From Macrostomum lignano (Eukaryota): DNA of 64,000 nt. The position numbers and the translations under genes are program-made. A model generated the notes under the pieces. The model was not told where the DNA came from. It worked only from the letters and a program-made list of their open reading frames with translations, and did no database searches. Each line of letters opens with the position of its first letter. Positions within the stretch are counted from its first letter, which is position 1. Below, piece by piece: positions 24,290 through 63,295 of this stretch. The stretch lies in NCBI GenBank assembly GCA_002269645.1, contig NIVC01000247.1, forward strand, positions 1 through 64,000, read 5' to 3'.

Positions 24290-27200
24290 TCATTGGCAGT
24301 GTGGCCTGCAGTCAGCTGGTGCCGCAGTCCTCACTGACATGGCCGGAGACGCTGTGAATCTCAACTGACAAGCTGATGTCGTAGCAGCCCCAGCAGGTGC
24401 ACCAGCACCACCAGCTGCTGCAGCAGTCGATGTCGAAGAAGACGCTCCGTGCAGAAATGTCGGCGAATACGGCGGCGGCGGCATCAGGAAGATTGGCGAC
24501 GTCACTTCGCTGCCAGGTGACAGAGTGCTGGAGCAGACGGTCGGGCTGAACCTCTGCCAGCGTGGCGAGTCGCACAGGTGGCAGGGCCGCGACTCCTGCT
24601 GCTGCTGCAGGTGGCTTCGACTGCTCAGGCCTCCTCCAGTGAAGGCTGCGGCGAGGCACCTGGAGTTGAAAAGATAAAATCTGAAGGCTACGTACGGCGG
24701 CTGTTCAGTCCAAGGACTGGGGGGTCACCTCACACACCCTCAATTAGCCAAGCTAATGCTGGCACCCATTTTACAGCTGAGTGAACTGAAGCAATGCAGA
24801 GTTAAAGTGTGTCCTGCTCAAGGACACAAATTGTTCGGAGTTGGGTTGGGAATCGAACCCCCGATCTTCAAATCGGAAGTCTGACGCTCTAAACGTTAGG
24901 CTAAAACCCCATCTCCATAGTACTCGTAGACTCAATAGATACTTAAAAGTTTCGTTCCAGAATTAACTCTGAACAAATTTATGAATAGATTACGAGTATT
25001 TTTAGATTACGAGACAATTTATTCCACTAGAAGTGTCACCGAGATATGAAAAATTCACTCCTATTGTGGTGTCTGATATTTCTAAAGATTTCCCTCAAAA
25101 TTCCGCTTGATATTCCTCGAGAATTCCCTGAATATAATTCCCAGAATTCCCCTTAAGATTGCCCCTCTGATATTTCCCCAGAATTCACCTCCCCCCTAAG
25201 ATTCCTTCTCTGATATTTCTCGAGAATTCCCTTATGATTCTGTGTTGAATTCCTCCAGCATTCCCCATCAAAGCCGCACGCAGCTCACTCTGCACTGCTC
25301 ACCCGGGCGCCTGCTGCTGCAGCAGAGGTGTACTCGGGTACGACCTGCCCTGCTCCTGCGGCAGGTAGCAGCCACCGGCCGAAGCCGCAGTGAACGCAGC
25401 CGAAGCCGCCGCTAGCTGCTCCTCGTTATTCCGTCCACCGGTGCAGCTCCCCGACTTTGACGCCGAAGCCGCTGACGAACTTCGCCGAGAGCCGCCGTTG
25501 GCGTAGCGCCGTTTCAGACGCAGCGCGTAGCAGGCGGCGCAGAGCAGCAGCCCGAAGGAGGCGAAGCAGGCGACGCAGACGCCCAGGACGAGGCGACGCC
25601 ATGCCGGTCGGAGAAACTCGGCGAAGCTCATCTCGTTGTCGTCGGCAGATGGTTTCCGTGTCGTCTTAGGCGGCTCTGCTAGCTGCGGTGGCGGTGGCAG
25701 CCAGTTGAAGTTGTCGTCGCCTTCATTGTTGCGCTTTCTCAGCTGCGGGCGGTCCGCTTCCGAGCTGCCGTCAAACTTGACGCGCTCTCGAATCGGCAGC
25801 GGACGGACCTTCAACCTGACGCTTGCAGTCACCACTCCGGAGGCGTTCGCAGAGGAGAACCGGGAGCTGGGGCCTCGATGACTTCGCAGCAGGTCCGCAG
25901 AGCAGGTGTACAAGCCAGCCATCTCCTGGCGCACATCAGCCAGCTTCAGGCTGACCACATGGTAACTGTTGCGCTCGAAGAAATCCCTGAGAGACAGCTG
26001 GCGCCGATGCTGACGCCCGCCCGTCTCTGAGAAGCCGTCCAGACGGTCTTCGCTGCGGAGATGAAGGATGGATTTTGATGAATGAGCAGCTGAGGCAGAA
26101 CTTCCACTTTGACAATTTGAGGGCGCTTAAAAGGTAGATACTTTCAAAAAAGCACCGTTGTGGCGCCAAAAAGGGACTATTGGGGGGGGGCAAAAAGACA
26201 CTATGATGTGGCGCCAAAACGACACTATGATGTGGCGGCAAAAAGACACTATGATGTGGCGCCAAAACGACACTATGATGTGGCGCCAAAACGACACTAT
26301 GATGTGGCGCCAAAAAGACACTATGATGTCGCGCCAAAACGACACTGATGTGGCGCCAAAACGACACTATGATGTGGCGCCAAAACGACACTATGATGTG
26401 GCGCCAAAACGACACTATGATGTGGCGCCAAAACGACACTATGATGTGGCGCCAAAAAGACACTATGATGTGCCGCCAAAAAGATACTATAATGTGGTGC
26501 CAAAAAGACACTATGATGTGCCGCCAAAAAGATACTATAATGTGGTGCCAAAAAGACACTTTGATGTAGCGCCAAAAAGACACTATACTGTGGTGCCAAA
26601 AAGACTACGAGCGTATGATGTAGCGCCAAAAAGACACTATGATGTGGCGCCAAAGAAACTATATGATGTGGCGCCAAAAGATACTATTAAGCTATTATTA
26701 CTACTTTACAATGGCCAATCCGTTATCCACGCCAAGCGGTGACTCAGCGACAAAAATTTCTCTGCCAATTCAATCGTCATGTTTTTTCAAGTTATTCCGC
26801 AGCTGGCGTGATTGACGATGAAGGGGGGGGGTTGCTTTCGGCCAATCATTCACTGCCTAAGCTGCAGTCTGCAGTTGCTTTTTGCTTCAGCCGCTTTGAC
26901 ACAAAATCAATGATGCGCGCTTTTCTACAGAAAGAAGAAAAACCAACAACTTCTGATTGGAAATTGATGGGCTGAAAGAGCCGCGGCAAATTACTGATTT
27001 CCGACCGCGCTCTCCGCTTCGGGCTCTGCTTTAAAGGACTTTTTTTGTACGATTTTGGTTCTCCGCTGTCTCATATTAATTACACCTCATCTCACCTCTC
27101 TCCCTCTCTCTCCCTCTCTTCTTTTCCCACCCTCTAACCCTCCCTTCCATCCTCTCTCGCTCTCTCTCTCTCCATCCGTACCCTCTTTCATCCTCCCTGC

Positions 27201-30200
27201 CGTCTCACCCTCTTTCCCCCAGTCTCCCCTTCTCTTCTCTATGTTCCCTTCTCCCACCCTCTCTCCCCCTCTCTCCGTATTTCTTCTCTCGTTTCGTCTC
27301 ATATTCCCTCATATTTCCAGTTCAATCTCCATGCAAGTACAAGCGTGTATGTATTTTTATCAAGATTTAGCGATGCTACTGAACGTTGATTTTCTCAACA
27401 TATCGGTATACATTTTTGTACATCAGTTTCAAGCATAAAGGTGTACGCAAGCGACTAGGGTTCTATGTAGTTTTAAGTGTACTTTTAAAGTAGAAGCTCG
27501 TGAAGTCCTCGTTTTAAAACAGTCTAAAAGCCCAAAACGGGGTCAGCGGAAAGTTTCTTAAAGTCCATTGCTTTCGGACCGAAGCACAGCCGACTAAGGA
27601 ATTCGGCAAACATTCAGCTAGCAACAACCAAAGCTTTAGTTATACAAGCGTAACATTGTTAAATCCACTGTGGCTCCCAGACCAATAAATGACTGTCGGA
27701 ATAGCTGATCCTTGCATGTTTGCATTGGAAAGTTTTTGCTTTTTTAGTTTTTTGAAGGAGAAATTCCCCCATAGAAAAATTGGGACTGATTTTTATCGTA
27801 AACGAAACAATTATATAGTTTAGACTGGGGAGAGACGGGAGACAGGCAGGAGACAGACCGGAGACATACATGAGACAGACAGGAGACAGACAGGAGACAG
27901 ACAGGAGACAGACAGGAGACAGACAGGAGACAGACAGGAGACAGACAGGAGACAGACAGAAGACAGACAGGAGACAGACAGAAGACAGACAGGAGACAGG
28001 CAGAAAGCAGACAGGAGACAGAAAGGAGACAGACAGGAGACAGACAGGAGACAGACAGGAGACAGACAGGAGACAGACAGGAGACAGACAGGAGACAGAC
28101 AGGAGATAGACAGGAGACAGAGAGGAGACAGACAGAAGACAGACAGGAGACAGAAAGGAGACAGACAGGAGACAGACAGGAGATAGACAGGAGACAGAGA
28201 GGAGACAGACAGAAGACAGACAGGAGACAGAAAGGAGACAGACAGGAGACAGACAGGAGACAGACAGGAGACAGACAGGAGATAGACAGGAGACAGAGAG
28301 GAGACAGACAGAAGACAGACAGGAGACAGAAAGGAGACAGACAGAAGACAGACAGGAGACAGGCAGAAAGCAGACAGGAGACAGAAAGGAGACAGACAGG
28401 AGACAGACAGGAGACAGACAGGAGAGAGACAGGAGACAGACAGGAGACAGACAGGAGACAGACAGGAGATAGACAGGAGATAGACAGGAGACAGAGAGGA
28501 GACAGACAGAAGACAGACAGGAGACAGAAAGGAGACAGACAGGAGACAGACAGGAGACAGAAAGGAGACAGACAGGAGACAGACAGGAGACAGACAGGAG
28601 ACAGACAGGAGACAGACAGGAGACAGACAGGAGACAGACAGGAGACAGACAGGAGATAGACAGGAGACAGAGAGGAGACAGACAGAAGACAGACAGGAGA
28701 CAGAAAGGAGACAGACAGGAGACAGACAGGAGACAGACAGGAGACAGACAGGAGACAGACAGGAGACAGACAGGAGACAGACAGGAGACAGACAGGAGAC
28801 AGACAGACAGACAGACACGAGACAGACAGGAGACAGAGAGGAGACAGACAGGAGACAGGCAGGAGACAGACATGAGCCAGGCAGATAAAACACGCAGTGA
28901 TATTTCATAGGATCCATGCTATGTCTAATTCTAGGCAATTCAAAAGCAGTGCTGGCTCGCCACACCAGCTAAGACGCACTGGGAAGGCTCTGCCCAGATT
29001 TCATCCAGCAATGTAAGACGGCGATTATATTCCTAATTTCCTTTTTAAACCCGCGACCCCGTCTTAGGGCGCAGTTCCTGCAGTAGCTGATCCCCGCCAG
29101 AGTCAATATCCGATACTTGGCCTCGCAGCGAGAGTCACGTGACCCGCAAGGCCCCCCAGCTTTGCCCACTTATAGCCCCTGCCCTCCAGCCAGAAAGGCA
29201 CTGCATCAGCAGCAGCTAGGAATTGGGATTTTCTCCGCTTTCACCACAGTTCGGTTTCGAGTGCGCGTTTTTTCTTGGGGGGGGGGGGGGGGAACGGATC
29301 CCCGCGGCAGCTACGATGAAGAAAGTCGTCCCTGCAGACTCCAGATGGGGTATCTCCAGTCTGAACTTAAAGGGATATTGCTGCTTTGGATTTTAGGGAG
29401 CTTCGCAGTGAGTGGGGGGTTTTGGATGTTGTAAAGATTTTACCGAATGATCTGCATTGTTTGTTTATGCAGCGGTGCCCGCAGATTTTTGCTGTATTTT
29501 TCTTTCTTGGAAATTAGAAGGTTGGCAATTTCTGCAGGTTCAGCGTACTGCGTTGAATTTTGACTGTTTTTTATAGTCTAGGCCGTAAAAATGGGCAGCA
29601 ATGCACTGGCATCCCAAATTGGCGACAATTTTACAGGTTTACAATCATATTTATTAGGGGCAGAGCAGACTCCCCTGAGCAGTCACACAAGCGCGCGCAA
29701 GCGACCCGAACTATATTTATCGTTAGCCTGCATGTACACTTTACTGTGCCTTGGGGGTTGGGCCCTCAAGGGCGTTAATTGCACGAGCCGAGATTCAAAT
29801 CTAGCTCCAAATTAATGTGACTGCATTTTAAATCGAGCTGGGGCCGCTGGCACATCAGATCGCCGCGCCAGACCACTCCAGGGGTAGAACACTCTCACAC
29901 TACGACCCCTGGTTCGATTCCGTGCAAGGTCACATTCATTTGGGGCTTCTGTCCACGAAACTTCTGTGCACGCAATTCACATCCATGAGGGCCAACCCCA
30001 AGGCCCAGAAAGTGTACATGCCAGACGATTGTATTTTCTCAGGAATCAGCGAAATCGCCTCAGCGTTGACAGTGAGACGATGTCGCCGATGGCTTTTTAG
30101 TGTCTGTGGAGGATTTTTTTACCTGACGTTCAACCTACTTTCTCCACGGCGAAGCCATCAGATAAGGCCAGCGGAATCTGAGCCATGGAATGATCGGAAA

Positions 30201-32639
30201 TGTACCCAGAGACATGAAAACTGCCACTCCAAATACACAGTCGGAAAGCCTAACGTCGTTTGAGCTAAAGTCAATCGTACTGGTAGCGGTTTTCGACGTT
30301 GCAAGATTTGAGATGCCTCGAAGTTGAGGATTGAGGTGGAGACGTGCATTTTCTGTACCGCGACGAAGCTTCTGCATCCTCGCCGAAACTTCCAGGGCTG
30401 TGGGCCAGATAGACCTTGGTCCCGGCTACACATCGGCTACGTCGGATCAGTAGCTGGCGAGATGCTGCTGGTGGTGGTCGACGCCAATTCCAAACAACTA
30501 GACGTGTCGGATAACAGGCCCAATTTAATGAGCAAACAGATTTCGGAATTCCTGCGTAACAATGGTATCCAGCAGTTTAGGGTGGCACCTTATCACCCAG
30601 CCGAGTTGTTCAGACGGACGCTAAAGCGGCCCTTGGAAAAGCAGCGCAATGGATCTTTCAAGGAAAAAGGAGAAAGTGCAGCATGGATTTTTTCTGAGCT
30701 ATCGCGTCACGCCGCATGCAACATCCGGCCGGTATGCTTCCTGCTAGCTTCTCATTGGACGCAAGGAGCGACAAGGCAGTAAGGTCCGATTCTTGATGTT
30801 CGAGCATGGTGACAAGGTCCTGGCCAGAGACTTTAGTGTTAGTCAATGGAAGATAGCTATGAGTAGTCAGTGTTGCTGACACTGAATGCAATACCTCTTC
30901 AGATTCAATAATGACGATCCAGTAGTTCGACGAAATGTTGGACGACGTCCTCAGAGGTCCTCAGCGACAGCCTGATAGACTCCAAGGCTGAGAATAGTGC
31001 TGAGTTCTCGAACCGGTGATTCGCTTGAGTCCAACCGCGCCAGAAGGTCCTGAGGTGCAGGTGATTCGCTGCACAGGTCATTGAGGATGCGCCGACAGAC
31101 TGACCGATTGACCGTAACGTTGACTGTGACAAAACTGATTGCTTTTGAGACGAAATGGACTGTATTTTACTTAGTTCCCTTACACTCAACCGTATTTTTG
31201 CGTTAATGGTGTTTTGAAGCCCCAGTTTTTGTGGTTTAATTTCTTTTTTTGTTCGATTTTTGTCGAGAAATTCAACACACGAAAGTCTTTCGATTTTCGT
31301 ACCTGAAGTCGTTTTGCTTGTTTTTCTTTCTTTGAAGTGTTTCGTTACAATATTATTTGTCACTATAGTTGTACCAGCTACTAAAATACCTCCAAAATGG
31401 AGCTGATACGTTTAATATTGTTACTAATACAGACCCCTATTATTATTACCTATATTATTATAATTGCATTTATTTTTAGCTTCTGATCATATTTCATTGT
31501 GTCCAGTCATGTCCTATATCCTATTGTATGATACTTCAACGAAACCACAAAAAATAATTTATTCTTAGAAGCATTTCTCAATATATCGACAGCAATTCGA
31601 TCAACGTAAGAATCGCATTTTGTGAAGTGCGCATGCGCTTGAAGTGCCACTGGCAGCCGCGCAAAGGGACACGCAAGAAAGCAATTTTGCAGCTGGGCTG
31701 AATTGATCCGCAGTGTCTGGTTATCAGAACACAGGACGACTGAGCCTGCCTTTGATTGAATCTGGGATATCATAACTGTAATTAATTGAATCTCCTTTAT
31801 ACACACTGCTGGAGCGTCAGCTTCATCCAGAGAAGCTGGGATAACGAAACTAGCCCAGTTTATAGAAATTCGGGTAGAATGGATGTGCTTTTTCGCGATT
31901 TCCCCTATTCCATTACACTACACAACTCTACTCTACTCTAATCAGATCTAGTCTACCCTACTCTACTCTATTCCACCCTAATTTACCCTAATCTACTCTA
32001 CCCTACCCTACCCAACATTACGCTAGCCTAATCTACTCTACCCTACTCTACCCAATCTTACCCTACCCTAATCTACTCTACCCTACCTTATTCTACTCCA
32101 CCCTATGAGCGTATTCGATTCTACACAATTCTACACTACTGCACCCTACTGTATTCTATTCTACTTTACTATAATCTACTCCACTCTACTCTACTTTACT
32201 TTAATCTACTCTACTCTACTCTACTCTACTATACTCTAATCTAATCTACTCTACTCTACTCTACTCTACTCTACTCTACTCTACTCTACTCTACTCTACT
32301 CTACTCTACTCTACTCCTCACAAACCATTCCAGATTTTAAAGCCACAACTTATCTTGACTAGATGGTATCTCCTGTTTTGTATCATTAAACCAGTGTCTG
32401 ATTCAACGCCAGATTGCCAGAATCAATTCCATTCGAATCAAATTTCAATTTCAATTCAGCCGTGCAAATTAATTCCCTCACCTGACGAAGCTCCACCTGA
32501 GCGAATCCGGCTGTGCCAGGCTGATGTTGAGCAGGATGCAGAACAGGTGCACTAGGCTGCCCAGCTCCGCTGTCTGAGTTGCATTTGGTCGGAGCTCGAG
32601 AATTCCAGCTGCTGATGATGCTGCCAACGGCTGCTCCAT
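24290..32639 (-). CDS. Single Ig-domain type I membrane protein with a PPPY cytoplasmic motif (5' end uncertain)
   Basis: Exons 32639(?)-32482, 26052-25303 and 24659-24290 join in phase through GT-AG sites (158+750+370 nt). Ig B/C strands GSLVHLFC...DSLRWSF and E/F strands LKLADVRQEMAGLYTCSA. TM segment LVLGVCVACFASFGLLLCAACYAL, tail FLMPPPPYSP. No clear signal peptide was found. Confidence 0.72.
24681..24905 (-). mobile_element. tRNA-derived SINE with a CORE-like domain
   Basis: Minus strand: TAGCCTAACG (A-box-like), GGTTCGATTCCC (B box), then GTGTCCTTGAGCAGGACACACTTTAACTC...CTGTAAAATGGG, resembling the MIR/CORE motif. A related copy lies at ~40973-41150. Confidence 0.7.
26195..26690. repeat. 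24-bp minisatellite CTATGATGTGGCGCCAAAA(C/A)GACA
   Basis: About 20 copies at the 3' end of the Ig-gene intron. Confidence 0.93.
27080..27300. repeat. CT-rich low-complexity tract
   Basis: Pyrimidine-only degenerate run. Confidence 0.8.
27835..28875. repeat. 11-bp minisatellite GACAGACAGGA
   Basis: About 90 copies with period 11. It creates the 381/404-aa Leu-Ser-Val-Cys ORF artefacts. Confidence 0.95.
30300..31000 (+). mobile_element. Degenerate Ty3/Gypsy integrase remnant inside the Ig-gene intron
   Basis: VETCIFC (HHCC tail), PWSRLHIGY.G...LLVVVDANSK, SDN.P...FLRNNGI...APYHPA, GDKVLARDF and an RRPQR..QPDRL-type C-terminus. The first catalytic Asp is replaced by Gly, and there are internal deletions. 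Confidence 0.8.
31920..32318. repeat. (CTACT)n pentanucleotide microsatellite
   Basis: Degenerate run becoming perfect from ~32245. Confidence 0.92.
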
Positions 32640-34766: not shown

Positions 34767-37700
34767 ATGGCTGATGAAAACCAATCGTTAAACACGCTGG
34801 ATTCAGCAATTCAGGTGACTTCGCTGCACAAAGGTTACGGCAGGCAGGCCGTAATTAGCGACCTGTCGCTTCAGGTGCCCTTGGGAAAAATGTAAGTAAA
34901 ATACCTTGGCTTAATTTCTGAGTTAAATGTTTAGGAATACCTCAACCAGTGTTGACGGTAAAAATGAATGTGGCCGCTTTTGGATTCGAACCCAGGCGCC
35001 GTAGGCGAGAGCCAGGCGCATTTTACCGCTGAGCTGCCCTGCCCCAAGTCGCAGACTCACAAATTGCTCTTCATCATTCGAATCTGTTTCAAAACCGCAT
35101 TATTAAATTGAGAAAGCCTTAGTGGAGTTTCATATTATAATCGTTCCAGCTACGGCCTGCTGGGTCCCAGCGGCTGCGGCAAGACCACGCTTCTCAAGTG
35201 CATCGTGGGCCGTCTGAGACCGGACTCGGGCCTCATCCGGGTCATGGGTCAGCGGCCAGGGAAGCTGGGCCACAAGGTGCCGGGCAGCCTCATCGGCTAC
35301 ATGCCGCAGGACCTGGCGCTGTACCAGGAGTTCACCATCTCCGAGACGCTGTTCTACTTTGGCAGAATCTTCGGCATGGACTCGGCCGAGATCAAAGCGA
35401 GGGTTGACTTTCTGGTAAATCTGCTCAAGCTGCCGTGCAAGGACAAGCTGATTTACCGACTCAGGTGAGGAATTGGGGAAGCAGTGATGCAACTCAGAAT
35501 CCGTGTCCAGCATTGAACTTCACGAGATTCACGTGGCGCAGCAACTCCATTTCAGCGGCGGTCAGCAGCGCAGAGTTTCGTTTGCTTGCGCCCTGCTGCA
35601 CGAGCCGCCTCTGCTGATCCTGGATGAGCCAACTGTGGGAGTGGACCCTCTGCTCAGGCAGTGGTGAGTGCCGGTCTGTGAGCATGGGTGAGGAGCCTCT
35701 GCTCAGGCAGTGGTGAGTGCCGGTCTGTGAGCATGGGTGAGGAGCCTCTGCTCAGGCAGTGGTGAGTGCCGGTCTGTGAGCATGGGTGAGGAGCCTCTGC
35801 TCAGGCAGTGGTGAGTGCCGGTGTGTGAGCATGGGTGAGGACCCTCTGCTCAGGCAGTGGTGAGTGCCGGTGTGTGAGCATGGGTGAGGACCCTCTGCTC
35901 AGGTAGTGGTGAGTGCCGGTTGTGAGCATGGGTGAGGAGCCTCTGCTCAGGCAGTGGTGAGTGTCGGTCTGTGAGCATGGGTGAGGAGCCTCTGCTCAGG
36001 CAGTGGTGAGTGCCGGTCTGTGAGCATGGGTGAGGAGCCTCTGGTCAGGCAGTGGTGAGTGCCGGTCCGTGAGTGGCTAGACCTTGCAAATCTTTAGTGG
36101 ATAGAATGCCTTCCATAAATTCAGTGCCTAAAAAATACCTACTTGTCTCTTCCTTAAAAATCGCCTTGCAGCATTTGGCATCATTTAAAAACTATGGTCA
36201 GCAATGCCCAGAAGCCCACATCAGTGGTCATCACAACGCACTACATTGAAGAGGCTCGCGAAGGCCACATGGTGGCGCTGATGCGAGATGGAAAACTTCT
36301 GGCAGAGTCGAGTCCAGAGAGTTTGCTCAGCTTCTACAATGAGACGGTAAGGTTCAATTACTTTTCAAAGTTTTCGGAAGCATCATGTTTCTGAAGCTGC
36401 ATCTACCTATCGCTGATACGCAGAGTCTCGAAGCCGTTTTCTTGAAGCTTTGCCATCGAGACAAATCGAAAGTGGCCGACGACAGCAGCCTTCCGAGCCT
36501 GGCAAATGTGGATGATGCGAAGCAGCCAATCGAAGCTGAAACTGAAGATGACAATGCGAAGAAGGAAACGCCAGATCCGGGATCTCAGTACTCACTGGAC
36601 TCAGTCAATTCACAGAAACAGAGCCAGCAGGCGCAGGAAGGTCAACCGGACGCGGTGAAATACGTCGAGCCCGTCTCGTTCTCTGAGTCACTGCGAGCTT
36701 TTGTGCAACCGCCGAGTGCTCGTAGAATTGGTGCTGTGGTGATCAAGGATGTCACCAACATGCGCAGACGCATCGGGTTCCTGCTGTTCGAGTTCAGCCT
36801 CCCAGTAGTGCAGATCGTGCTGTTCTGCCTGTGCATCGGGCGCGACCCTAACGGACTGCGACTGGCGATCGTCAACCAGGATGCCACTGGAGACCTCGGC
36901 AAGGATCTGGTGGCCTCACTCGATACTTACACAGTAAAAAAGGTCTGTAGGACTCCTTGTGAAAGTCAGAACATTTGCCGTATTTAAATTACCTGTTTTC
37001 TAACAGAAATCGTTTCTTTTGATTTACTGAACTTTCGAGCTCAAGAAGTTTCGAACTTGTAAAGTTGTCTTTGACGAAGTTTGAAAGGGCCTGCCAACTT
37101 AAGCTCGTAAAGTGGAGCCCGAGTAACCGATGTACAAAAAATGATACGTCATTCTGCTTACAAAGGCACTAGAAAGCTGGGTTTGGCAAAGTGACGAAAA
37201 TTGGGCTTGGGATAGGGGAAAACAAGCAAGGGGATTTAGAGACTCTACTTTTTGAGCTTAGGTTGACAATCCTTTTGAGCCTGTCAGCTCATAACTCATT
37301 TAATATTTTCAAAAATTTCTGAAACTTGAAACCTAATAAAAACTGCCTCAAGTAGTTTGAACTAAGCAGTAGGGGTTAGGTACTTCTAAAACAGTAAAAA
37401 TCACTCCATCAAGTAACAACTTCTCTGCAAATTTGCGCTCTCAACCTCCTCCCTCAGCTGCCGCATACTGACTTGGAGCAGGCGAAAGCTTTGGTGCAGC
37501 GAGCCGGAGCCTGGGGAGTGCTTTTCCTGGAGCCCAACTTTACTCAAAGCCTGACTAAACGGTTCACCAAGGCTGGCACTCTCAGCAACAGAAGCATCCG
37601 TCAGGGCAGCGTGCACATGTTTATGGACGATAGCAGCTACCAGGTTAGCGCGGTGCTCAAACAGTGCATACTAAGCGCCTTCGAGAAAGTCCTTGGCGAC

Positions 37701-39551
37701 GTTATGGAGAAGATGCAGCTGCACAGGAAGATGGCGCGAATCCCGATTGAGTATCATCCGCCACTGCTCGGATACGAGGATCCAACATTCACCGAGTTCA
37801 TGGCACCGGGCATCATCATCACCATTCTGTTCTTCTTGTCCACCGGACTCACAGCTGTCACCTTTGTTGTACAACGTAAAGAGGGCCTCCTCGATCGAAG
37901 TCTCGTGGCCGGAGTTACCTTCTTGGAGCTGATGCTGGGTCACGTGCTCACGGAGTTGATCATCATGTCTGGTACGAATTTCGCGCTATTCTACCGTATG
38001 CAAATCCAGCTGAAATGAAGTGGCTTTGTATTTCTAACTCAGCTCTACTCAATAGGCGCATCAAGTTTTACTATCTAGCCAAGCTTGCTTGTTAGAATTG
38101 CAAGGACCACAAACCCGTTTGCAGGTCAAACCGCACTGTTGCTGGTGCTGTCTCTTCTGGCATTCTCCATCAGGTGCAACGGCTCTGTGGCCTTGGTGAT
38201 CCTGCTGTCTCTGTGCTGCGGCTTCAGTGGCATGTCGCTGGGCCTCCTCATCTCCGTGCTGTGCACCGATGAGAACTCGGCGATGCAGGCCGCTCTGGGC
38301 ACCATGTACCCCTGCCTGTTGCTCAGCGGCATCATGTGGCCGACTGAGGCCATGCCCGTGGCGCTCTGGTACATGAGCAGGGCCTTGCCAACCACCCTGT
38401 TGGCTGAGTCTATGCGTTCGGTGATCAGCCGAGGTGAGTGAGACTACAGTGGGAGCAGAATACATTCTCACAATAATTTAGAGCTCTCTGTGCACCAAAA
38501 TTAGTCTGTGACTTGTCATTTTGTATCGTATATTTTCGTATCGTATTGTGTCGTGTCGTATCGTGTTGTGTCGTGTCGTTTCGTGTAGTGTCGTATCGTA
38601 TCGTGTTGTGTCGTGTCGTTTCGTGGTGTTTCGTGTCATGTTTTTTTCGTTTCGTGTCGTATCGTGTCGTGTCTTGTATTGTGTCGTGTCGTATCGTGTC
38701 GTGTCGTATCGTGTCGTGTCGTATCGTGTCGTGTCGTGTCGAATCGTGTTGTGTCGTATCATATCGTGACGTGTCATGTATTGTGTCGTGTTGTTTTGTG
38801 GTGTTTCGTGTCATGGTTTTTTGTGTCGTGTCGTATCGTGTCATGTATTGTGTCGTGTCGTATCGTATCGTGCCGTGTCGTTTCATTTGTATCGTGTCGT
38901 GTCGTATCGTGTTGTGTCGTGTCGTATCGTGTTGTGTCGTGTCGTTTCGTGGTGTTTCGTGTCATGGTTTTTTTCGTGTCGTGTCGTATCGTATCGTGTC
39001 ATGTATTGTGTCTTGTCGTATCGTGTCGTACCGTGTCGTTTCATTTGTATCGTGTCGTGCCGTGTCGTTTCATTTGTATCGTGTCGTACCGTGTCGTTTC
39101 ATTTGTATCGTGTCGTGCCGTGTCGTTTCATTTGTATCGTGTCGTGTCGGATCCTGTTGGGTCGTGTCGTATTCTGTTGTGTCGTGTCGTTTCGTGGTGT
39201 CTCGTGTCGTGGTTTTTTCGTGTCATGTCGTATTGTGTGGATTTCCGCGCTCAGGGGTCAGCGAAATTGACTGCTTAACCGTTTTTCTGGCTGCGCTGCG
39301 GTTGTCGACTGTCGCCAAATTGATTTGCGGGGAAGTCCAAACCACCGGTTAAAAATCTAAATGAAGAATGAGACTGATACCTGACACACCAAGCTTTATT
39401 TTTTGAGAATCGCGTCAAAAAACTTAAAAACTCGCACGCAGGCTTCGGCATGTCGGCAACATCCGTGTGGCTCGGGTTCGTGTCGGCTTCTGGCTGGTCC
39501 GTGTTCCTGCTGCTGGCGGCACTGCTGCTCATCAAGCTCAGAGGCATCTAG
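34767..39551 (+). CDS. ABCH: ABC half-transporter, ABCH-type (NBD-TMD), 724 aa, 8 exons
   Basis: Exons 34767-34891, 35150-35464, 35556-35663, 36172-36346, 36424-36942, 37458-37971, 38125-38433, 39442-39551 (2175 nt, in frame, all GT-AG). Walker [10 protein letters not shown]-loop [28 protein letters not shown], and a membrane domain with FTEFMAPG and [12 protein letters not shown]. Confidence 0.9.
34975..35043 (-). mobile_element. tRNA(Glu-CTC)-like pseudogene or SINE head in ABCH intron 1
   Basis: Minus strand GGCAGCTCAGCGGTAAAATG...CTCTCGC...GGGTTCGAATCC gives A/B boxes, but there is no paired acceptor stem. Confidence 0.5.
35647..36075 (+). repeat. 49-bp tandem repeat containing the exon 3 end and its 5' splice site (9 donor copies)
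   Basis: Unit CCTCTGCTCAGGCAGTG|GTGAGTGCCGGTCTGTGAGCATGGGTGAGGA(G/C). The first copy is the functional donor at 35663/35664. Confidence 0.93.
38520..39240. repeat. (TCGTG)n-type pentanucleotide array in the last ABCH intron
   Basis: GTGTC/GTATC units with higher-order blocks. The CRIV/VSYR ORFs are artefacts. Confidence 0.92.
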
Positions 39552-40747: not shown

Positions 40748-43173
40748 TCAGACACCTCGAAGCTTGATGAGCAACAGCGACAACATCAGCAGCAGGACGG
40801 ACCAACCAGACGAGGACACGACTCCAGCCCACACGGATGTGGCTGTCATATCGAAGCCTTAAATATAGGGAATTAAAAAACGGAGAGATGGAAGTCAATT
40901 TCATAAATTCGCTTTGCCAAATAAAGCTAACGAGCTTAGTGAAAATGGTTTTTTTGCTATTGCGCGGCACATCTGAAGGCTGCGTACGGCTGTTCAGTCC
41001 AAGGACTGGGGGGTCGCCACACACCCTCAATTACCCCAGCTAATGCTGGTATATCTATTTAAGTGTCTTGCTTAGGGACACACAAATGATTCCGGGTGGG
41101 CTGAGACCTTTCAGTTGTAAGACCATCTAACCATGCTCTAACCACTTTGCTTAGACTTGGTGTAAAACAGCCCTGACTTTCCATTGTACAGCGCTGGGGT
41201 CTGTTTCTGTGATTCTGTGCTTCACAGCTAGCTCAGAATCAAACTCAGACAAGTGGAGCTATTTGAGGCGAGGGGACCCCTAGCTACACCCTTGAGCTCA
41301 GGTAATGTGGGTCGAGAGTGTACCGTAGTCAGTGCGTAAGTTTTGCCAGCGGTAATCAGCTATGATTATACAGGTATCGCTCAGTTTTTTTGTAAAGAGT
41401 TCCCGATGACGACTCACCTCGACTGATCACCGAGCGCATGGCCTCAGCAGACAGGGCAGTCGGCATCGCCCTGCTGATGTACCAGAGCGCGGTGGGCATG
41501 GCTTCGATTGGCCACATGATGCCGCTGAGCAGCAGGCATGGGTACATGGTGCCCAGAGCCGCCTGCATCGCTGCATTCTCATCAGTACACAGCACGGAGA
41601 TGAACAGGCCCAACGACATGCCGCAGAAGCCGGTGCTCATGGTCAGCAGGACCACCACTGCTGGTGAGCCATGGCAGGGAATCGCGAAGACGGCCAGACA
41701 GACAACCAGGAGAAGGCCGGCTTGAACTGCGGTTGAAGGATGACATTAAGATTCAGAACTTTCTTTCGATTCCCTCATCTTGTCAAAGGTTTTAAAAGTT
41801 TGTCAGTCTAATTAATACAGGGGCTGAAAGTTGATCTTTTTCAGTATCAACGCGACTTCTTGATCTGCCAAGAGGGATCTGTTGACTCAAAATGACTCAA
41901 AATTTTCTACAAGAACGAATGCTCGAATGGACGAACGCTGGCTAAGAATAATACGAATCGTAATAAAAAATTACCGAAGAGTTGCGGAATGTCAGATTTA
42001 TCCACATAAATTGACAATAACTATCATTTCTTACTAATTTATCCCTGTAATTTGCGTTTTGTGACCCCTAATTGGGCCGTTTAGTTCGAGTGATTTGTAC
42101 AGTATAATAGTTTCACGATCGATAATTTAGGCCACGCGCACAAAGAGATCCAGTTATTATGACCTTTAAATATAACCTGCCTCGCCTCGATTTAATAACT
42201 TTCTCTCACCTTTCTCTCTCTCTCTCTTACCGGCGACTTTTACAACCGCATGCTTTTAAATTTAGCTTTCCGTCTTCGGTATTTGTCCTACTAAGCAATT
42301 GGACACGGTCACCCTGCAGCAACGACTTCAACGACATCGCCCAACAATCACTTGTGACGGCAATTCTGCCCATTCCCCTGACTCCTGAGCAACATACAAG
42401 CTCGCCAATACTGTACACAGGCACAGCACTCGTACACACGCTCACACAGGTGTACATTATAGCCCTGACTCTGTGCTTTTGTAGGTTGGTTTTGAGAAAC
42501 ACGGGATAGCAAGTACTTTTGAAGGGCAAAAAATCTCGCTATTATGAAGAGCTAAGCGTCATCCCTTACCAGACATTACGACCAGCTGCGTGAGAATATG
42601 GCCCAGCATCAGCTCCGCGATAGTGACTCCAGCCACCAGACTCCGGTCAAGGAGGCCGTGCCGGCGCTCCGAAACAAAGGTGACAGCTGTGAGTCCGGTG
42701 GACAGGAAGAACAGGATGGTGATGATCATGCCCGGTGCCATGAACTCGGTGAATGTCGGGTCCTTGCTGCCCAGAAGAGGCGGTTTGTACTCGACGGGCA
42801 GACTGGCCAGAACACGCGGCTGACCTTGCTTCTCTAGCAGGTCGCCAATGAAGTCCTGCAGGTGCTTGGCGATGGTCTTTTGCAACACGGCGCTGACTTG
42901 ATAGTTGGTGTCGTCCATCTCCAGGTGCAGGCTGCCCTGGCGCAGGGTCTCGTTGCTGAGCCCCACCGGATTGATGAGGCGCTGGGTGAGGCTGCTTGAA
43001 AAATTCTTTCTAAAGTGCAGCACCGACCAGGCATTGGCGCTAAGAACCTCGGCTCTGGCCTGCTGCAGATCCGGGAAGATCACCTGGTGGAGGGAAGAGA
43101 TGACCGACATTAACCAACTAACAAACTAACAAGATAACTAACTGACTAACTAATTAACTAACTAACTAACTTG

Positions 43174-43223
<50 letters not shown>

Positions 43224-43254
43224 TGCTAACTAACTAACTAACTAACTAACTAAC

Positions 43255-43315
<61 letters not shown>

Positions 43316-43338
43316 GACTAACTAACTAACTAACTTGA

Positions 43339-43426
<88 letters not shown>

Positions 43427-43606
43427 CAACTAACTAACTAACGAACTAACTAAATAAATAACTAACTAACTAACTACCAAACTAACTAACTAACTAAATA
43501 ACTAACTTGCTAACTTACTAACTACCTAATTAATTAACTAACTAACTAGCTAACTAACTAACTAACTAACTGACTAACTAACTAACTAATTAACTAACTA
43601 ACTAAT

Positions 43607-43640
<34 letters not shown>

Positions 43641-43765
43641 CCTAGCTAACTAACTAACTAACTTACTAACTACCTAATTAATTAACTAACTAACTAGCTA
43701 ACTAACTAACTAACTAACTGACTAACTAACTAACTAATTAACTAACTAACTAACTAACTACCTAG

Positions 43766-43851
<86 letters not shown>

Positions 43852-43874
43852 GACTAACTAACTAACTAACTTGA

Positions 43875-43958
<84 letters not shown>

Positions 43959-44138
43959 CAACTAACTAACTAACGAACTAACTAAATAAATAACTAACTA
44001 ACTAACTACCAAACTAACTAACTAACTAAATAACTAACTTGCTAACTTACTAACTACCTAATTAATTAACTAACTAACTAGCTAACTAACTAACTAACTA
44101 ACTGACTAACTAACTAACTAATTAACTAACTAACTAAT

Positions 44139-44172
<34 letters not shown>

Positions 44173-44297
44173 CCTAGCTAACTAACTAACTAACTTACTA
44201 ACTACCTAATTAATTAACTAACTAACTAGCTAACTAACTAACTAACTAACTGACTAACTAACTAACTAATTAACTAACTAACTAACTAACTACCTAG

Positions 44298-44372
<75 letters not shown>

Positions 44373-44377
44373 CCTAG

Positions 44378-44438
<61 letters not shown>

Positions 44439-44458
44439 CAACTAACCAACTAACTAAA

Positions 44459-44508
<50 letters not shown>

Positions 44509-44884
44509 CCAAACTAACTAACTAAATAACTAACTTGCTAACTTACTAACTACCTAATTAATTAACTAACTAACTAGCTAACTAACTAACTAACTAACTG
44601 ACTAACTAACTAACTAACTAACTTATCAGCGGCTAAAAGTGGGGATCGAACCATGCGGGGCAGACTGAGACCGGTTTCGGGCTTTTTTGCCCTCGTCAGT
44701 CAGTCATAGCCACACGAGGTCGGCTCCACCTCTAGCCAGCTGAGTGGAACTGCTATTTATGCGCCCTTGCACATGGCGACATTTTCTAGTCCACCATGTG
44801 AGGAATTCGCGCCATGCTCGAATAGCTTTACTATCAGTAAGCTATCGCTTACATAACTAACTAACTAACTAACTAACTACCTAG

Positions 44885-44941
<57 letters not shown>

Positions 44942-46955
44942 CAACTAACTAACTAACTAACTAACCAACTAACTAAATAACTAACTAACTAACTAACTAA
45001 CTACCTAACTAACTAACTAACTAACTAACTAACTTGCTAACTTACTAACTAACTAACTAACTTGCTAACTTACCAACTACCTAATTAACTAACTAACTAT
45101 CCAATTAGCTACCTTTCCCAGTTTTTTTCCGTCCAGTGATTCGATGAACTCCCTGCTGTAGTTTCCGCTAACATCGTCATTAACGATGGCCAGCCGCAGG
45201 TCCCTGGGCTCCGGACCAACGCATAAGCAGAACAGGACGATCTGCAGCACCGGCAAGCTGAACTGGAACAGCAGAAAGCCAATCCGCCTGATCATGTTGG
45301 TGAAATCCTTCAGGACCACCGCGCCGATACGTCGAGGTTTCGGTAGAGACCGAAACGACTCCAGTGACGATGCAGAATCTCTTATAAGCTCGGGCGTGCG
45401 ATTGGAGCTTTTTATCTCAACTGCAGACGTCATTTCAATGCTTATCGAAGCCAAATCCACATCGTTCCCATTGGCATCTGTGTTCAGCTTCACAACACAA
45501 TTGTCTGCAGGTTCAAGCTGCTGTTCCCTGCCGCTGCGACTGGCTTGACAGCAGAGCTTCAGAAACACGGACTCAAGACTCTGGAAAGTTCATGCAACTC
45601 TGATTAGTCAAATGGATTATTTCAATAATCTTTCGGTAAAATCAATCACACGTACTGTCTCTCCAAATTCGTTGAGCAGAGTTTGGGGACTCGACTCTGC
45701 CAGAAGCTTGCCGTCTCGCATCAGCGCCACCATATGGCCTTCGCGAGCCTCCTCAATGTAGTGCGTTGTGATGACCACTGATGTGGGCTTCTGGGCGTTG
45801 CTCACCAGGGAGTTTAAGTGATTCCAGATGCTGAAGTAGTTAATTTTAAAAAGGCTTCTTATTGCGTTGAGTTGATTTTGAGGTCGAATAAGCAACGCAC
45901 TCACACACCGGTACTCACCACTGCCTGAGCAGAGGCTCCTCACCCATGCTCACACACCGGCACTCACCACTGCCTGAGCAGAGGCTCCTCACCCATGCTC
46001 ACACACCGGCACTCACCACTGCCTGAGCAGAGGCTCCTCACCCATGCTCACACACCGGCACTCACCACTGCCTGAGCAGAGGCTCCTCACCCATGCTCAC
46101 ACACCGGCACTCACCACTGCCTTCACTGCCTTCACTGAGGGTCTTCACCCATGCTCACAGACCGGCACTCACCACTGCCTGAGCAGAGGGTCCACTCCCA
46201 CAGTTGGCTCATCTAGGATCAGCAGAGGCGGCTCGTGCAGCAGGGCGCAAGCGAACGAAACTCTGCGCTGCTGACCGCCGCTGAAATGGAGTTGCTGCGC
46301 CACGTGAATCTCGTGAAGGTTCAATGCTGGACACGGATTCTGAGCTGCATCACTGCTTCCCCAATTCCTCACCTGAGTCGGTAAATCAGCTTGTCCTTGC
46401 ACGGCAGCTTGAGCAGATTTACCAGAAAGTCAACCCTCGCTTTGATCTCAGCCGAGTCCATGCCGAAGATTCTGCCAAAGTAGAACAGCGTCTCGGAGAT
46501 GGTGAACTCCTGGTACAGCGCCAGGTCCTGCGGCATGTAGCCGATGAGGCTGCCCGGCACCTTGTGGCCCAGCTTCCCTGGCCGCTGACCCATGACCCGG
46601 ATGAGGCCCGAGTCCGGTCTCAGACGGCCCACGATGCACTTGAGAAGCGTGGTCTTGCCGCAGCCGCTGGGACCCAGCAGGCCGTAGCTGGACATGAGGG
46701 TTCATGGAGGTGTGCAACGAATAATCTCTTTTCTGCTCTTACCAAATATGTGCACTGACGAAGACCACCAAGGACCAGCGCAAGTCGCTAAAACCTTCAT
46801 GTAACTATTAGCACTTGGAATAGCACTTACATGTGTCCTTTCTGCACTTGGAGTGTCAGGTCCCGGATAACCGATCCACGAGCTTGGCTATAGCCTTTCC
46901 ATAGCGAGCGAACCTCGATAGAATAATCGCTGCCGTTAGCTGCATCAGTAGCCAT
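40748..46955 (-). CDS. ABCH: ABC half-transporter, ABCH-type paralogue, 707 aa, 8 exons
   Basis: Exons 46955-46831, 46687-46373, 46280-46173, 45830-45656, 45580-45113, 43083-42570, 41726-41418, 40857-40748 (2124 nt, in frame). Seven of eight exon lengths equal those of the plus copy. Starts [15 protein letters not shown], ends LLIKLRGV*. Confidence 0.9.
40973..41150 (-). mobile_element. Second, internally deleted copy of the CORE-like SINE
   Basis: CTGAAGGCTGCGTACGGCTGTTCAGTCCAAGGACTGGGGGG...CACACCCTCAATTA...GCTAATGCTGG matches 24681-24770. Confidence 0.75.
44623..44853 (-). mobile_element. ~230-bp SINE/retrozyme-like insert with Pol III-like boxes flanking a hammerhead ribozyme
   Basis: Unique sequence flanked on both sides by (GTTA)n. 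Minus strand: CCACTCAGCTGGCTAGAG (degenerate A box/D arm), then the ribozyme, then GGTTCGATCCCC (B box). Confidence 0.6.
44663..44705 (-). ncRNA. Minimal type I hammerhead ribozyme
   Basis: Minus strand GACUGA-CUGACGA-GGGC-AAAAAA-GCCC-GAAA-CCGG-UC^UCAGUC. It has a perfect 6-bp stem I, the full CUGANGA/GAAA/UH core, a 4-bp stem II and a palindromic ACCGGU stem III. Predicted cleavage is between 44669 and 44668. Confidence 0.88.
45897..46190 (-). repeat. 49-bp splice-donor tandem repeat in the minus ABCH gene (about 6 donor copies, one unit rearranged)
   Basis: Reverse complement of the 35647-36075 unit. The functional donor is at 46173/46172. Confidence 0.92.
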
Positions 46956-50109: not shown

Positions 50110-50844
50110 TCACTTAGCAGCGCTGGTGCTCTCGCGCATAGAGTGGGAGCGGGACCGCTTCCTCTCCGCCTTTCGCTCCCTAGCCTCCTTGGCCCGCTGG
50201 CCAATCAGCTTGGCGTACTCGGCCGCCTCTTCGCGCTTCTTTGTGGCGCGCCGGCGCTTCAGAGCCACGCGATGGCGCTTGCGCTGCAGCACAATCGGCG
50301 TCACCAGGCGCTGGATCTTCGGCGCCTTGGTGCGCTCCGGCTTGCCCTCCTTGGTCTTCTTCTTCTGCCGGATCACGTAGGCCCTGACGTCGTCTTTCTT
50401 AGTCAGCTGGAACATCCGCCGGATGTTGGAGGCCCGCTTCGGGCCCAGACGGCGCGGCACGGTGGTGTCAGTGAGGCCGGGGATCTCGCCGGGGCCTTTG
50501 TGCACAATCACCAGGCTGAGCACGGACAGGTTCGAGTCCACGATGCAGCCGCGCACGGATTTGCGCTTTCGCTCGCCTGTCCGGCGCGGCTTGTAGCAAG
50601 AGTGTCCGGCGGACAGCAGCAGGCGGACGCGGCCATTGGTGAGCACGCCCTGCTTCATGGGGAAGCCCTGTTTGTCGTTGCCGCCGCTGATGCGGACAAC
50701 GTAGCCCTTCCACTCCTCGCCAAGGCTGTCAGCTGGCACCTCGGCCGACATGCGCTTCTCAAAGAACGGCGTCAGCTTTTTGATGTCGTCAACTTCGAAG
50801 CATTTCTGCGATCCGGCAGTCGGGAAACTGACGTTGATCTTCAT
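50110..50844 (-). CDS. RPS6: 40S ribosomal protein S6 (eS6), intronless, 244 aa
   Basis: [14 protein letters not shown]...[24 protein letters not shown]...[16 protein letters not shown]...[10 protein letters not shown], with C-terminal serine cluster [18 protein letters not shown] on the minus strand at 50004-50009. Confidence 0.98.
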
Positions 50845-61029: not shown

Positions 61030-61917
61030 TCAACCTCTACGCCGACAATTTTTCCGCTTGCACGACTTGTTGTGTGGGTTGTACGCGCAGCCGTAGGCGC
61101 ACAGGTACTTGCCGGCGCAGTTGCCACCGTTTCTGCCGTACCTGTTGGCCACCTGGTCCGCTGCTGAGGATCTTTTCTTTTCACTCTGGCACAACTCGCG
61201 ACAGTCGCTGCAAATTAGGGAAAGAGAAATTTGGGGATAATTTATCTGGACAACTTAATCAAGCTTCCACGAATAAAAGCAACCGGATTTCCCTCTCATT
61301 GCTTGGATCAAAGTGCACAGTTGGTTCAAACCTATTTCAAAACTGATTTGAACAATTCTTGAATGACTAATTGCTAAAGCTACGAGTACTAAGCGGTGAT
61401 ATAGACCCGATCTTAAAAGATCGGCCACTACGCTATAAACCATTACATTGATCAAGCTGACATTTTGTCAGCTGAGCGTACGCTCACACAGAGTGTACAC
61501 AGCGGCCCTGACTTTTTAATCGTCAAACATGTCCACTCTCTGTGCTATGGTGTTGGATTAAATTGAATTCGACAGCTCACAGAATCGAATCAGAGATCGT
61601 TAAAACGCTGCGCATTACCTGATAGCCTTAGCAATCAATCGATTTTTCAGCACATTGGCACCGCAGTGGTGCACCGCATTGTAGTTGCCCATGCAGTGAA
61701 AATATTTATCGCACTTCTTGCAGTTGGCTGAGACCATGTCTCTGTAGGCCTGAATCATTTTCCAGGCGGGGCAGCTGCTGGCAATCAAGCTGGGTCCGAT
61801 TGATCGCGCCAAACGCACTGGGCATCTGAAAATGCATCCGTAAAAGTCAAAGGCCGAGGACTGACCACACGAGACGGTCAAAAGAAGAACCACGGATGCT
61901 GCAAAGGCCAGCTTCAT
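61030..61917 (-). CDS. SAA: Secreted serum amyloid A-like protein, cysteine-rich, 158 aa, 2 coding exons
   Basis: Exons 61917-61619 and 61207-61030 (299+178 nt, phase 2, GT-AG). Signal peptide MKLAFAASVVLLLTVSCGQSSA. SAA motifs MIQAYRDMVSAN..DKYFHCMGNYNA, AKAISDCRE and SAADQVANRYGRNGG. Confidence 0.88.
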
Positions 61918-62409: not shown

Positions 62410-62995
<586 letters not shown>

Positions 62996-63295
62996 CTGAA
63001 GCCGACTGTAAAGACCTAGCTGCTTTGATGTGCGCTTTTTATCGTTCGCATTGCTTTAGCCTCACATGTACAAGCGTGTACAAATAGTTTTATTGAGTTG
63101 CCGAGCTGACTTCCTGTTAGCCAAGGTCTAAAAAGTAACTGCGAGCTATTGGCATTCAACTCAAAGGCAAATGCAGTACAAACGCTTTGCTTGGCTGAAG
63201 CATGCGGGCAGAAAGTAAGGATACAGCGTTTCGTGGATACGTTAGACTTACTCCGCAGTGATAATGAATTCAGAAGCAATTATTATCAACCGTCG

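Follow-up and report, generated by a model that had tools for sequence, protein, structure and literature searches.

A candidate hammerhead-ribozyme retroelement in an intronic (GTTA)n microsatellite of the flatworm Macrostomum lignano

A 64,000-nucleotide (nt) stretch of Macrostomum lignano DNA (assembly GCA_002269645.1, contig NIVC01000247.1, positions 1 to 64,000; hereafter the window) carries, on its minus strand, a small island of non-repetitive sequence with a type I hammerhead ribozyme motif. The island interrupts a (GTTA)n microsatellite that occupies an intron in a gene for an ABCH-like ABC transporter. The hammerhead motif is almost certainly real, and direct evidence from neighbouring array units establishes the island as a genuine insertion that entered an existing array. 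Its best reading is a small non-autonomous retroelement with a canonical metazoan type I hammerhead that landed in the (GTTA)n array. On balance, we consider it probable that the island is a solo monomer of an element resembling the Sm-alpha repeats of schistosomes or the non-long-terminal-repeat (non-LTR) retrozymes, inactive alone and carried as a passenger in the ABCH intron. This copy is most likely a dead-end passenger without a role for the host gene. The original prediction, made from the letters of the window, had called the element possibly undescribed; this probably holds for the instance in Macrostomum, for which no publication about hammerhead ribozymes came up in full-text searches, but not for the kind of element, which is already well described.

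The hammerhead was found letter for letter as first quoted, with a complete core and perfectly paired helices I and II. Helix I comprises 6 bp between GACUGA (44705-44700) and UCAGUC (44668-44663), and helix II comprises 4 bp capped by an A-rich hexaloop (GGGC-AAAAAA-GCCC, 44692-44679). The conserved core elements CUGANGA, GAAA and U-H are all present, as CUGACGA (44699-44693), GAAA (44678-44675) and U16.1-C17. Of helix III only the palindrome ACCGGU is left, with CCGG at 44674-44671, giving one or two pairs (A-U plus C-G). Reading of the sequence confirms the predicted cleavage site between C17 (44669) and the following U (44668), with U16.1 at 44670; the activity itself is a prediction. Helix I extends over an internal loop, CUAU/UGCC, into UGUGG/CCGCA. 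The GGC/GCC extension proposed originally can be drawn as well. Judged by its layout, the motif is a canonical metazoan type I hammerhead and not the "minimal" variant of Penelope-like elements with which it had been compared. The canonical type has a helix I of 6 bp, a helix II of 4 bp and a helix III of 1-2 bp with a small palindromic loop, and is active as a dimer (PMC4209133).

A search of both strands of the window against 4227 Rfam families matched Hammerhead_HH9 at 34.7 bits, with E = 5.5e-5 for the whole window and E = 3e-7 for the local stretch. The Rfam scan suggested as a check was thus positive in significance but not at curated thresholds, where no hammerhead family attained its gathering score (34.7 versus 52 bits for HH9). 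In the HH9 alignment, the helix III loop positions of the model are deleted, and the UAU bulge and the A-rich loop 2 align with the consensus, a layout that may permit tertiary contacts. A structural descriptor requiring the core, a helix I of at least 5 bp and a helix II of at least 3 bp matched once in the window and never in 100 shuffles. A relaxed pattern, defined by sequence only and constraining neither helix, retrieved from metagenome contigs three bona fide, unrelated type I hammerheads without tRNA-like boxes. Each has a perfect 6-bp helix I, and their Rfam Hammerhead_1 scores were 41.9, 39.3 and 33.7 bits, the last just below the gathering score of 34. When the window motif was aligned with these three, 100% of the base-pair cells in helices I and II were paired, and 5 of the 6 helix I pairs showed compensatory changes among the four independent hammerheads of this subtype. 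Viral contigs scanned with the exact and relaxed hammerhead patterns gave no matches. The Rfam E-value, the descriptor counts in window and shuffles, and the paired, covarying helices across four hammerheads together argue that the motif did not arise by chance.

The surrounding array records the insertion event. Read on the minus strand, positions 43111-45099 form a (GTTA)n microsatellite; Tandem Repeats Finder (TRF) detected (TAAC)n in 378 copies at 43111-44623 and in 61.5 copies at 44854-45099, separated by a lone non-repeat island of 230 bp. The length of 230 bp given in the original prediction therefore describes the island correctly, but the insert itself was set at about 227 bp (44627-44853), since ATAA, the last four letters of the island, could be a variant unit of the array. 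In unit-run notation, variant repeats mark higher-order units that make up the array, and the variant units upstream of the insert follow the higher-order pattern of the downstream array. Alignment with MAFFT identified the landmarks GCTAGGTA ... GTCA(GTTA)5GCTA(GTTA)3ATTAATTAGGTA in five array units. The insert is present in only one of these (44885-44551), and the site is empty in the units starting at 44298, 44178, 43766 and 43646. Because these four paralogous units lack the island, it represents an insertion into a pre-existing (GTTA)n array. The empty units likewise bear on the earlier proposal that the element either targets microsatellites or carries one as its tail: landing in, or targeting of, microsatellites is favoured, and the tail option is disfavoured. 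A scheme in which island and array form one larger repeat unit was rejected, because the higher-order units recur without the island. Terminal direct repeats, which would point to a copy of more than one unit, were sought in the insert and none was convincing.

The intron that houses the array consists almost wholly of (GTTA)n and the island, and a polypyrimidine tract precedes its acceptor. The open reading frames (ORFs) of the flanking exons (45089-45568 and 42559-43110) are 97.5% identical to M. lignano UniProt entry A0A1I8GJ08, whose sequence spans the intron junction (...LGK/VIFPDLQQ). Since the ABCH-like gene lies on the minus strand, the ribozyme is in sense orientation to its host gene.

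Folding predictions describe a highly self-paired RNA with two parts. The full 231-nt RNA has a predicted free energy of -91.8 kcal/mol (z = -4.9), and none of 200 shuffles was equally stable. Its 5' domain is predicted to contain a hairpin, GUAAGC-GAUA-GCUUAC (44852-44837), followed by a branched domain closed by GCUAUU/AAUAGC (44826-44752). This domain had no Rfam match at E ≤ 10, and blastn found no match to it elsewhere in the window or in two other M. lignano contigs (L001 and L002). In silico, the 3' half of the insert folds into a hairpin some 120 nt long that bears the hammerhead at its tip. The helix closing this hairpin (12+4 bp) has a duplex energy of -32.2 kcal/mol compared with -16.2 ± 3.3 kcal/mol for shuffled partners, a value equalled by 1 of 2000 shuffles.

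Within the ribozyme itself, the predicted behaviour depends on the number of copies. According to ViennaRNA, GACUGACUG pairs with CGGUC..AGUC in a slipped and inactive arrangement in the minimum free energy (MFE) structure of the monomer; the active fold within the 123-nt domain lies 8.6 kcal/mol above the MFE. The MFE structure of the homodimer computed with RNAcofold is a double hammerhead joined by a 6-bp intermolecular ACCGGU helix (-53.1 versus 2 x -25.0 kcal/mol). By this modelling, the monomer should be inactive and the homodimer should form an active double hammerhead, in line with the palindromic stem III and dimer action put forward originally. A short palindromic helix III has been tied to dimer activity (PMC4209133, PMC7229834), and work on newt satellite 2 makes the same connection. 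Some monomer activity may be possible with an internally looped helix I extension (PMC6155905).

Signals of tRNA type flank the ribozyme. The B-box motif GGTTCGANNCC has 6 matches in the window versus 0.13 expected, one of them in the island; at least three of the others (24849, 29911 and 34982) fall in tRNA-like sequences resembling short interspersed nuclear elements (SINEs). On the other side of the ribozyme, the D-arm pattern CTCAGYTGGYTAGAG has its single match in the window, and CTCAGCTGGCTAGAG (44744-44730) is an exact canonical tRNA D-arm. Placed on tRNA positions 8-19, this segment agrees with the A box at 6 of 9 specified bases, positions 8-10 being mismatched. The A-like and B boxes have the right order and strand and lie about 93 nt apart. 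The island's TTTT (44638-44635) is the sole stretch of at least four T found on the minus strand within 44560-44900; in the full-length fold it is paired inside the closing helix as part of CCACUUUUAGCC, and the opposite arm of that helix overlaps the D-arm-like segment. The description of a ribozyme between boxes resembling those of RNA polymerase III (Pol III) is fair on this sequence evidence: the exact B box and exact D-arm bear it out, and the A box does so in part. Transcription of the element by Pol III is plausible from the same signals.

The tRNA-like part has an unusual setting. Some 105 nt of unrelated, structured sequence come before the boxes, both of which are found in the 3' half of the insert, and the insert continues 8 nt beyond TTTT. 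A transcript from the internal promoter would miss part of the insert, so such a transcript, simply retro-copied, would not give this copy. The Rfam tRNA model gave no match at E ≤ 10. ARAGORN at default settings reported no tRNA with or without introns, and strongly relaxed thresholds gave poor models only. A tRNA carrying the hammerhead as an intron was rejected, ARAGORN's intron mode giving no match at default settings. By sequence reading, the T stem has only 2 bp and an acceptor stem is absent. The label "SINE-like" is not supported in a strict sense, given the position of the boxes in the 3' half; no tRNA cloverleaf is detectable, and the D-arm-like segment is predicted to pair with the tail.

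Three other tRNA-derived, SINE-like sequences occur in the window, at 24842-24910 (-), 29835-29960 (+) and 34960-35045 (-). The sequence at 24842-24910 scores 32.3 bits with the Rfam tRNA model, has no ARAGORN call and is followed by a conserved-looking core, …GTGTCCTTGAGCAGGACACACTTTAAC…TCAGCTGTAAAATGGGTGCC. Those at 29835-29960 and 34960-35045 both carry CACATTCATTT just after their B boxes and so look like members of one family.

The following life cycle would account for the element. Its RNA would be made from its own tRNA-type internal promoter, comprising the A-like box, the B box and TTTT; at this locus, host pre-mRNA could be an alternative source. A lone copy would take the slipped, inactive fold. 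Two copies could meet in the transcript of a tandem master locus or as two separate transcripts, and their ACCGGU palindromes would then form a 6-bp helix III, allowing both ribozymes to cut after C17. The resulting 5'-OH and 2',3'-cyclic phosphate ends may be joined by tRNA ligase into a small circle, and the circular RNA may be reverse-transcribed by an autonomous partner, a Penelope-like element or a long interspersed nuclear element (LINE), that is prone to nick simple repeats.

Known systems provide several points of comparison. The analogy drawn originally with schistosome Sm-alpha repeats is apt: Sm-alpha and Sj-alpha are SINE-like, tRNA-derived, hammerhead-bearing repeats present in thousands of copies in these flatworms (PMC2770079, PMC5993326). 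The island resembles them in its flatworm host and its size of a few hundred nt, in a canonical type I hammerhead that has CUGAYGAG, a loop 2 rich in A and a short palindromic helix III (PMC2770079, PMC5993326, PMC4209133), and in tRNA-type A and B box signals within the same element. In contrast to Sm-alpha, whose tRNA-like part is called tRNA-Gln by tRNAscan (PMC2770079), the island has no detectable tRNA, the two being compared by description; its ribozyme lies between the boxes, with the tRNA-like part in the 3' half of the insert. Sm-alpha also forms tandem arrays with thousands of copies, whereas the island is one solo copy known.

Non-LTR retrozymes are tandem units of 150-450 nt that give highly self-paired circular RNAs and hold most classical animal type I hammerheads; cnidarian units measure 220-245 nt, and retrozyme-like repeats have been reported in platyhelminths (Cervera and de la Pena 2020, PMC7229834). 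The island matches them in its canonical type I motif, a unit of about 227 nt, a highly self-paired RNA, the lack of an LTR, primer binding site and polypurine tract, and the listing of platyhelminth hosts. It differs in being solo at its locus, in a GC content of 52% versus under 50%, and in its tRNA-type promoter signals, which are undescribed in PMC7229834. It has been argued that retrozymes derive from Penelope-like elements as non-autonomous forms, and monomeric copies have been reported from vertebrate genomes (bioRxiv 10.64898/2026.07.22.740005).

Two further hammerhead groups share parts of this profile. HH9 (RF02275), an amniote intronic family, is the best-scoring model and resembles the window motif in intronic location, sense orientation, the internal loop of helix I (5' side UAY) and the A-rich loop 2. 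However, HH9 has a 3-bp helix III with a 5-nt loop where the window motif has only ACCGGU, and the motif scores below the family's gathering threshold. The hammerheads of Penelope-like elements (PMC4209133) have the type I topology, a very short palindromic helix III, dimer dependence (predicted for the island) and a tie to microsatellite insertion sites in common with it. They differ as "minimal" variants with a larger helix II, no loop-loop design and an adjoining ORF for reverse transcriptase (RT) and GIY-YIG endonuclease. A strong bias towards microsatellite insertion is known for Penelope-like elements (PMC8557442).

One of the metagenome hammerheads was characterized in its own context. 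On contig Ga0208500_1002938, the type I hammerhead at 34-76 (-), with 39.3 bits for Rfam Hammerhead_1, has the CUGACGAG…CGAAACCGGUC core and the ACCGGU helix III as in the window motif, together with an 11-bp helix I extension (CAUAGUUUAGA/UCUAGACUAUG). The hammerhead is located some 270 nt downstream of a repeat-rich ORF of 586 aa (no Pfam match), next to a Hint-domain ORF.

Further copies were sought in the window and at other M. lignano loci totalling 41 kb. In the window, blastn at word size 7 returned only chance matches of at most 25 nt to the island; the two best (35207 and 46630) are the Walker-A exons of two ABCH paralogues. The element was not found in two M. lignano contigs carrying ribosomal protein S6 (RPS6). 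Exact look-up of the 38-aa ORF of the island and a search with its nine open peptide stretches gave no match, and an integrase-like ORF search gave one unrelated match.

Several observations weigh against a Sm-alpha-like or retrozyme-like monomer. A single copy is known from the window and the 41 kb of other DNA, the latter containing neither an island copy nor a hammerhead. The copy is not tandem at its locus, though a tandem layout defines retrozymes; as monomeric copies occur in vertebrate genomes, this lowers the probability of retrozyme membership and is still compatible with it. The GC content of the insert, 52%, slightly exceeds the values of under 45-50% reported for the retrozyme class. 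The intact ribozyme in the middle of the insert implies that no self-cleaved linear monomer served as its template. Inspection by eye of the window ORFs of at least 70 aa, without a profile search, showed none resembling a reverse transcriptase, endonuclease or GIY-YIG protein. As both flanks consist of the same 4-nt repeat (GTTA), no tail or target-site duplication is legible. For transcription and cleavage, the proposed mechanism draws on sequence and predicted folds.

The competing explanation with most in its favour from the tRNA-type signals is a strict tRNA-derived SINE, in which the hammerhead, lying between the A and B boxes, takes the place of the anticodon arm. Pol III would start just upstream of the A box and stop at TTTT, giving a ribozyme RNA of about 120 nt, and a LINE with a (GTTA)n-like 3' tail would retropose it. 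The exact B box and D-arm-like segment in correct order and strand about 93 nt apart, and a lone TTTT 3 nt past the B box with no internal T4, are as expected for such a unit. The other tRNA-derived SINE-like sequences in the window suggest that promoters of this kind are in use in this genome, and Sm-alpha elements called as tRNA-Gln pseudogenes by tRNAscan do carry hammerheads (PMC2770079). However, an insert that starts about 105 nt before the A-like box and ends 8 nt after TTTT is not a copy of that Pol III transcript. No tRNA emerged from Rfam (E ≤ 10) or from ARAGORN at default settings with introns allowed, and the 2-bp T stem, the absent acceptor stem and the mismatched A-box positions 8-10 fit poorly. 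Unlike in any tRNA, the D-arm-like segment pairs in a 12+4-bp helix with the 3' tail, including TTTT. We therefore regard the strict SINE as rather unlikely. Also distinctly unlikely, on our estimate, is a Macrostomum family in which the hammerhead replaces the anticodon arm of a tRNA-type Pol III unit, is clamped by reshaped D-arm-like and post-B-box segments and homes to (GTTA)n. If true, it would constitute a natural "tRNA-promoter-driven ribozyme" cassette, and the island would be the first member seen.

Abortive target-primed reverse transcription in the microsatellite could instead have left a 5'-truncated 3' end (a pseudo-LTR fragment) of an autonomous Penelope-like element. Such elements carry pseudo-LTR hammerheads near their 3' ends, are often truncated, and show a strong microsatellite insertion bias with target-site duplications that are often unreadable (PMC4209133, PMC8557442, PMC11167929). 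Yet metazoan Penelope-like hammerheads are of the atypical "minimal" type, in which helix II is larger and a loop-loop design is lacking (PMC4209133, PMC7229834), whereas the window motif is canonical: its helix II has 4 bp, its loop 2 is A-rich and its helix I contains an internal loop. With no RT or GIY-YIG-like ORF apparent by eye among window ORFs of at least 70 aa, and with reported microsatellite targets being (TA)n, (CA)n and (C)n rather than (GTTA)n, this origin appears very unlikely. A domesticated intronic ribozyme that regulates ABCH pre-mRNA, comparable to HH9 and HH10 in introns of amniote RECK, CTCL and DTNB, would agree with the sense orientation within a spliced intron and with an amniote intronic family as top Rfam match. 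The site, however, is a fast-evolving microsatellite with sister units that lack the island, the inverted ABCH paralogue in the window has no element, the short helix III would not support efficient cleavage in cis, and an inactive monomer is predicted. Such a role is extremely improbable. Finally, a chance resemblance with no ribozyme would explain a score below Rfam gathering thresholds and the single copy known from the window and the 41 kb of other DNA. Against it stand the whole-window E-value of 5.5e-5, the absence of matches in 100 shuffles, the fit of the core, both helices, loop 2 and the helix I internal-loop layout to the family consensus, and the independent tRNA-like motifs on either side; its probability is practically negligible. 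The Sm-alpha-like or retrozyme-like solo monomer is thus the reading we retain, and the positions of its parts are given in Table 1.

Table 1. Positions of the island, its predicted parts and the surrounding array and intron in the window
Feature	Position	Strand	Basis and remarks
Core type I hammerhead	44663..44705	-	Descriptor scan; covariation in helices I and II
Extended hammerhead	44654..44714	-	Distal helix I, internal loop and core; Rfam HH9 alignment, 34.7 bits
Inserted element	44627..44853	-	About 227 nt, 52% GC; 5' structured domain and ~120-nt 3' hairpin with hammerhead
(GTTA)n array 5' of insert	44854..45099	-	TRF: period 4, 61.5 copies, 88% matches
(GTTA)n array 3' of insert	43111..44626	-	Higher-order repeat of ~532 bp (TRF, unit-run notation)
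5' domain (predicted)	44752..44852	-	MFE and centroid structures
Closing helix, 5' arm CAGC-U-GGCUAGAGGUGG (predicted)	44726..44743	-	Pairs with 44642-44626 (MFE, centroid)
Closing helix, 3' arm CCACUUUUAGCC-GCUG (predicted)	44626..44642	-	MFE, centroid, duplex energy
D-arm-like / A-box-like segment CCACTCAGCTGGCTAGAG	44730..44747	-	Exact match to D-arm pattern CTCAGYTGGYTAGAG
B-box / T-loop-like segment GGTTCGATCCC	44642..44652	-	Exact match to GGTTCGANNCC
TTTT, possible Pol III terminator	44635..44638	-	3 nt past the B box
Intron of ABCH-like ABC transporter gene	43084..45112	-	GT donor 45112-45111, AG acceptor 43085-43084

The ABCH-like gene belongs to an inverted duplication, with copies at 35100-38500 (+) and 46750-41360 (-). 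The Walker-A exon protein is identical between the two copies, and a common 49-bp minisatellite occupies equivalent introns (35636-36073 and 45900-46200). The (GTTA)n intron with the ribozyme island is confined to the minus-strand copy.

Near the ABCH gene, an intact intronless ORF for RPS6 (244 aa) is located at 50110-50844 (-). Its protein is identical, and its DNA 97% identical, to sequences on two contigs of GCA_002269645.1 (L001 and L002). The similarity ends at the ORF borders and the flanks differ, which indicates different loci and a dispersed intronless copy, either a retrogene or a gene duplicate. L001 and L002 represent the homeologous pair of RPS6/CEP104 loci in M. lignano. They show an insertion difference: a 364-aa ORF, recognized by eye as a mariner/Tc1-like transposase, is present in L002 (12660-13751, -) and missing from L001.

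Other features of the window include a 586-codon open frame at 19998-21755 (+) with a Mab-21 C-terminal (HhH/H2TH-like) domain (PF20266, 26.4 bits, cut-off 24.1), possibly an exon of a cGAS/Mab21-like gene. A 100-aa ORF at 61615-61917 (-) has a signal-peptide-like start and a serum amyloid A (SAA) domain (PF00277, 39.4 bits, cut-off 30.8). In it, cysteines take the place of several residues conserved in vertebrate SAA. A degraded retroelement integrase-like frame was found at 30312-30779 (+), and its sole database relative is 35% identical and carries Pfam rve (PF00665). The region is extremely rich in tandem repeats. Two large 23-bp satellites of differing consensus extend over 1-7101 (313 copies, 93% matches) and 11210-15596 (190 copies, 82%), and an 11-bp unit (27822-28884), (TCTG)n (62419-62998) and many other mini- and microsatellites were also present.

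If the island is a lone relic, it is merely one more genomic hammerhead. Within one array, the empty sister units reveal an insertion into a microsatellite with unusual clarity. A ribozyme between tRNA-type boxes, if it recurs in other copies, would bear on how such repeats are transcribed, a point on which the cited literature is vague. As a Sm-alpha-like or retrozyme-like element, the island would extend hammerhead retroelements from parasitic flatworms, the schistosomes, to a free-living, early-branching and genetically tractable flatworm in which transgenesis is available. Transcription, dimer-dependent cleavage, circularisation and mobilisation would then become testable in vivo in Macrostomum.

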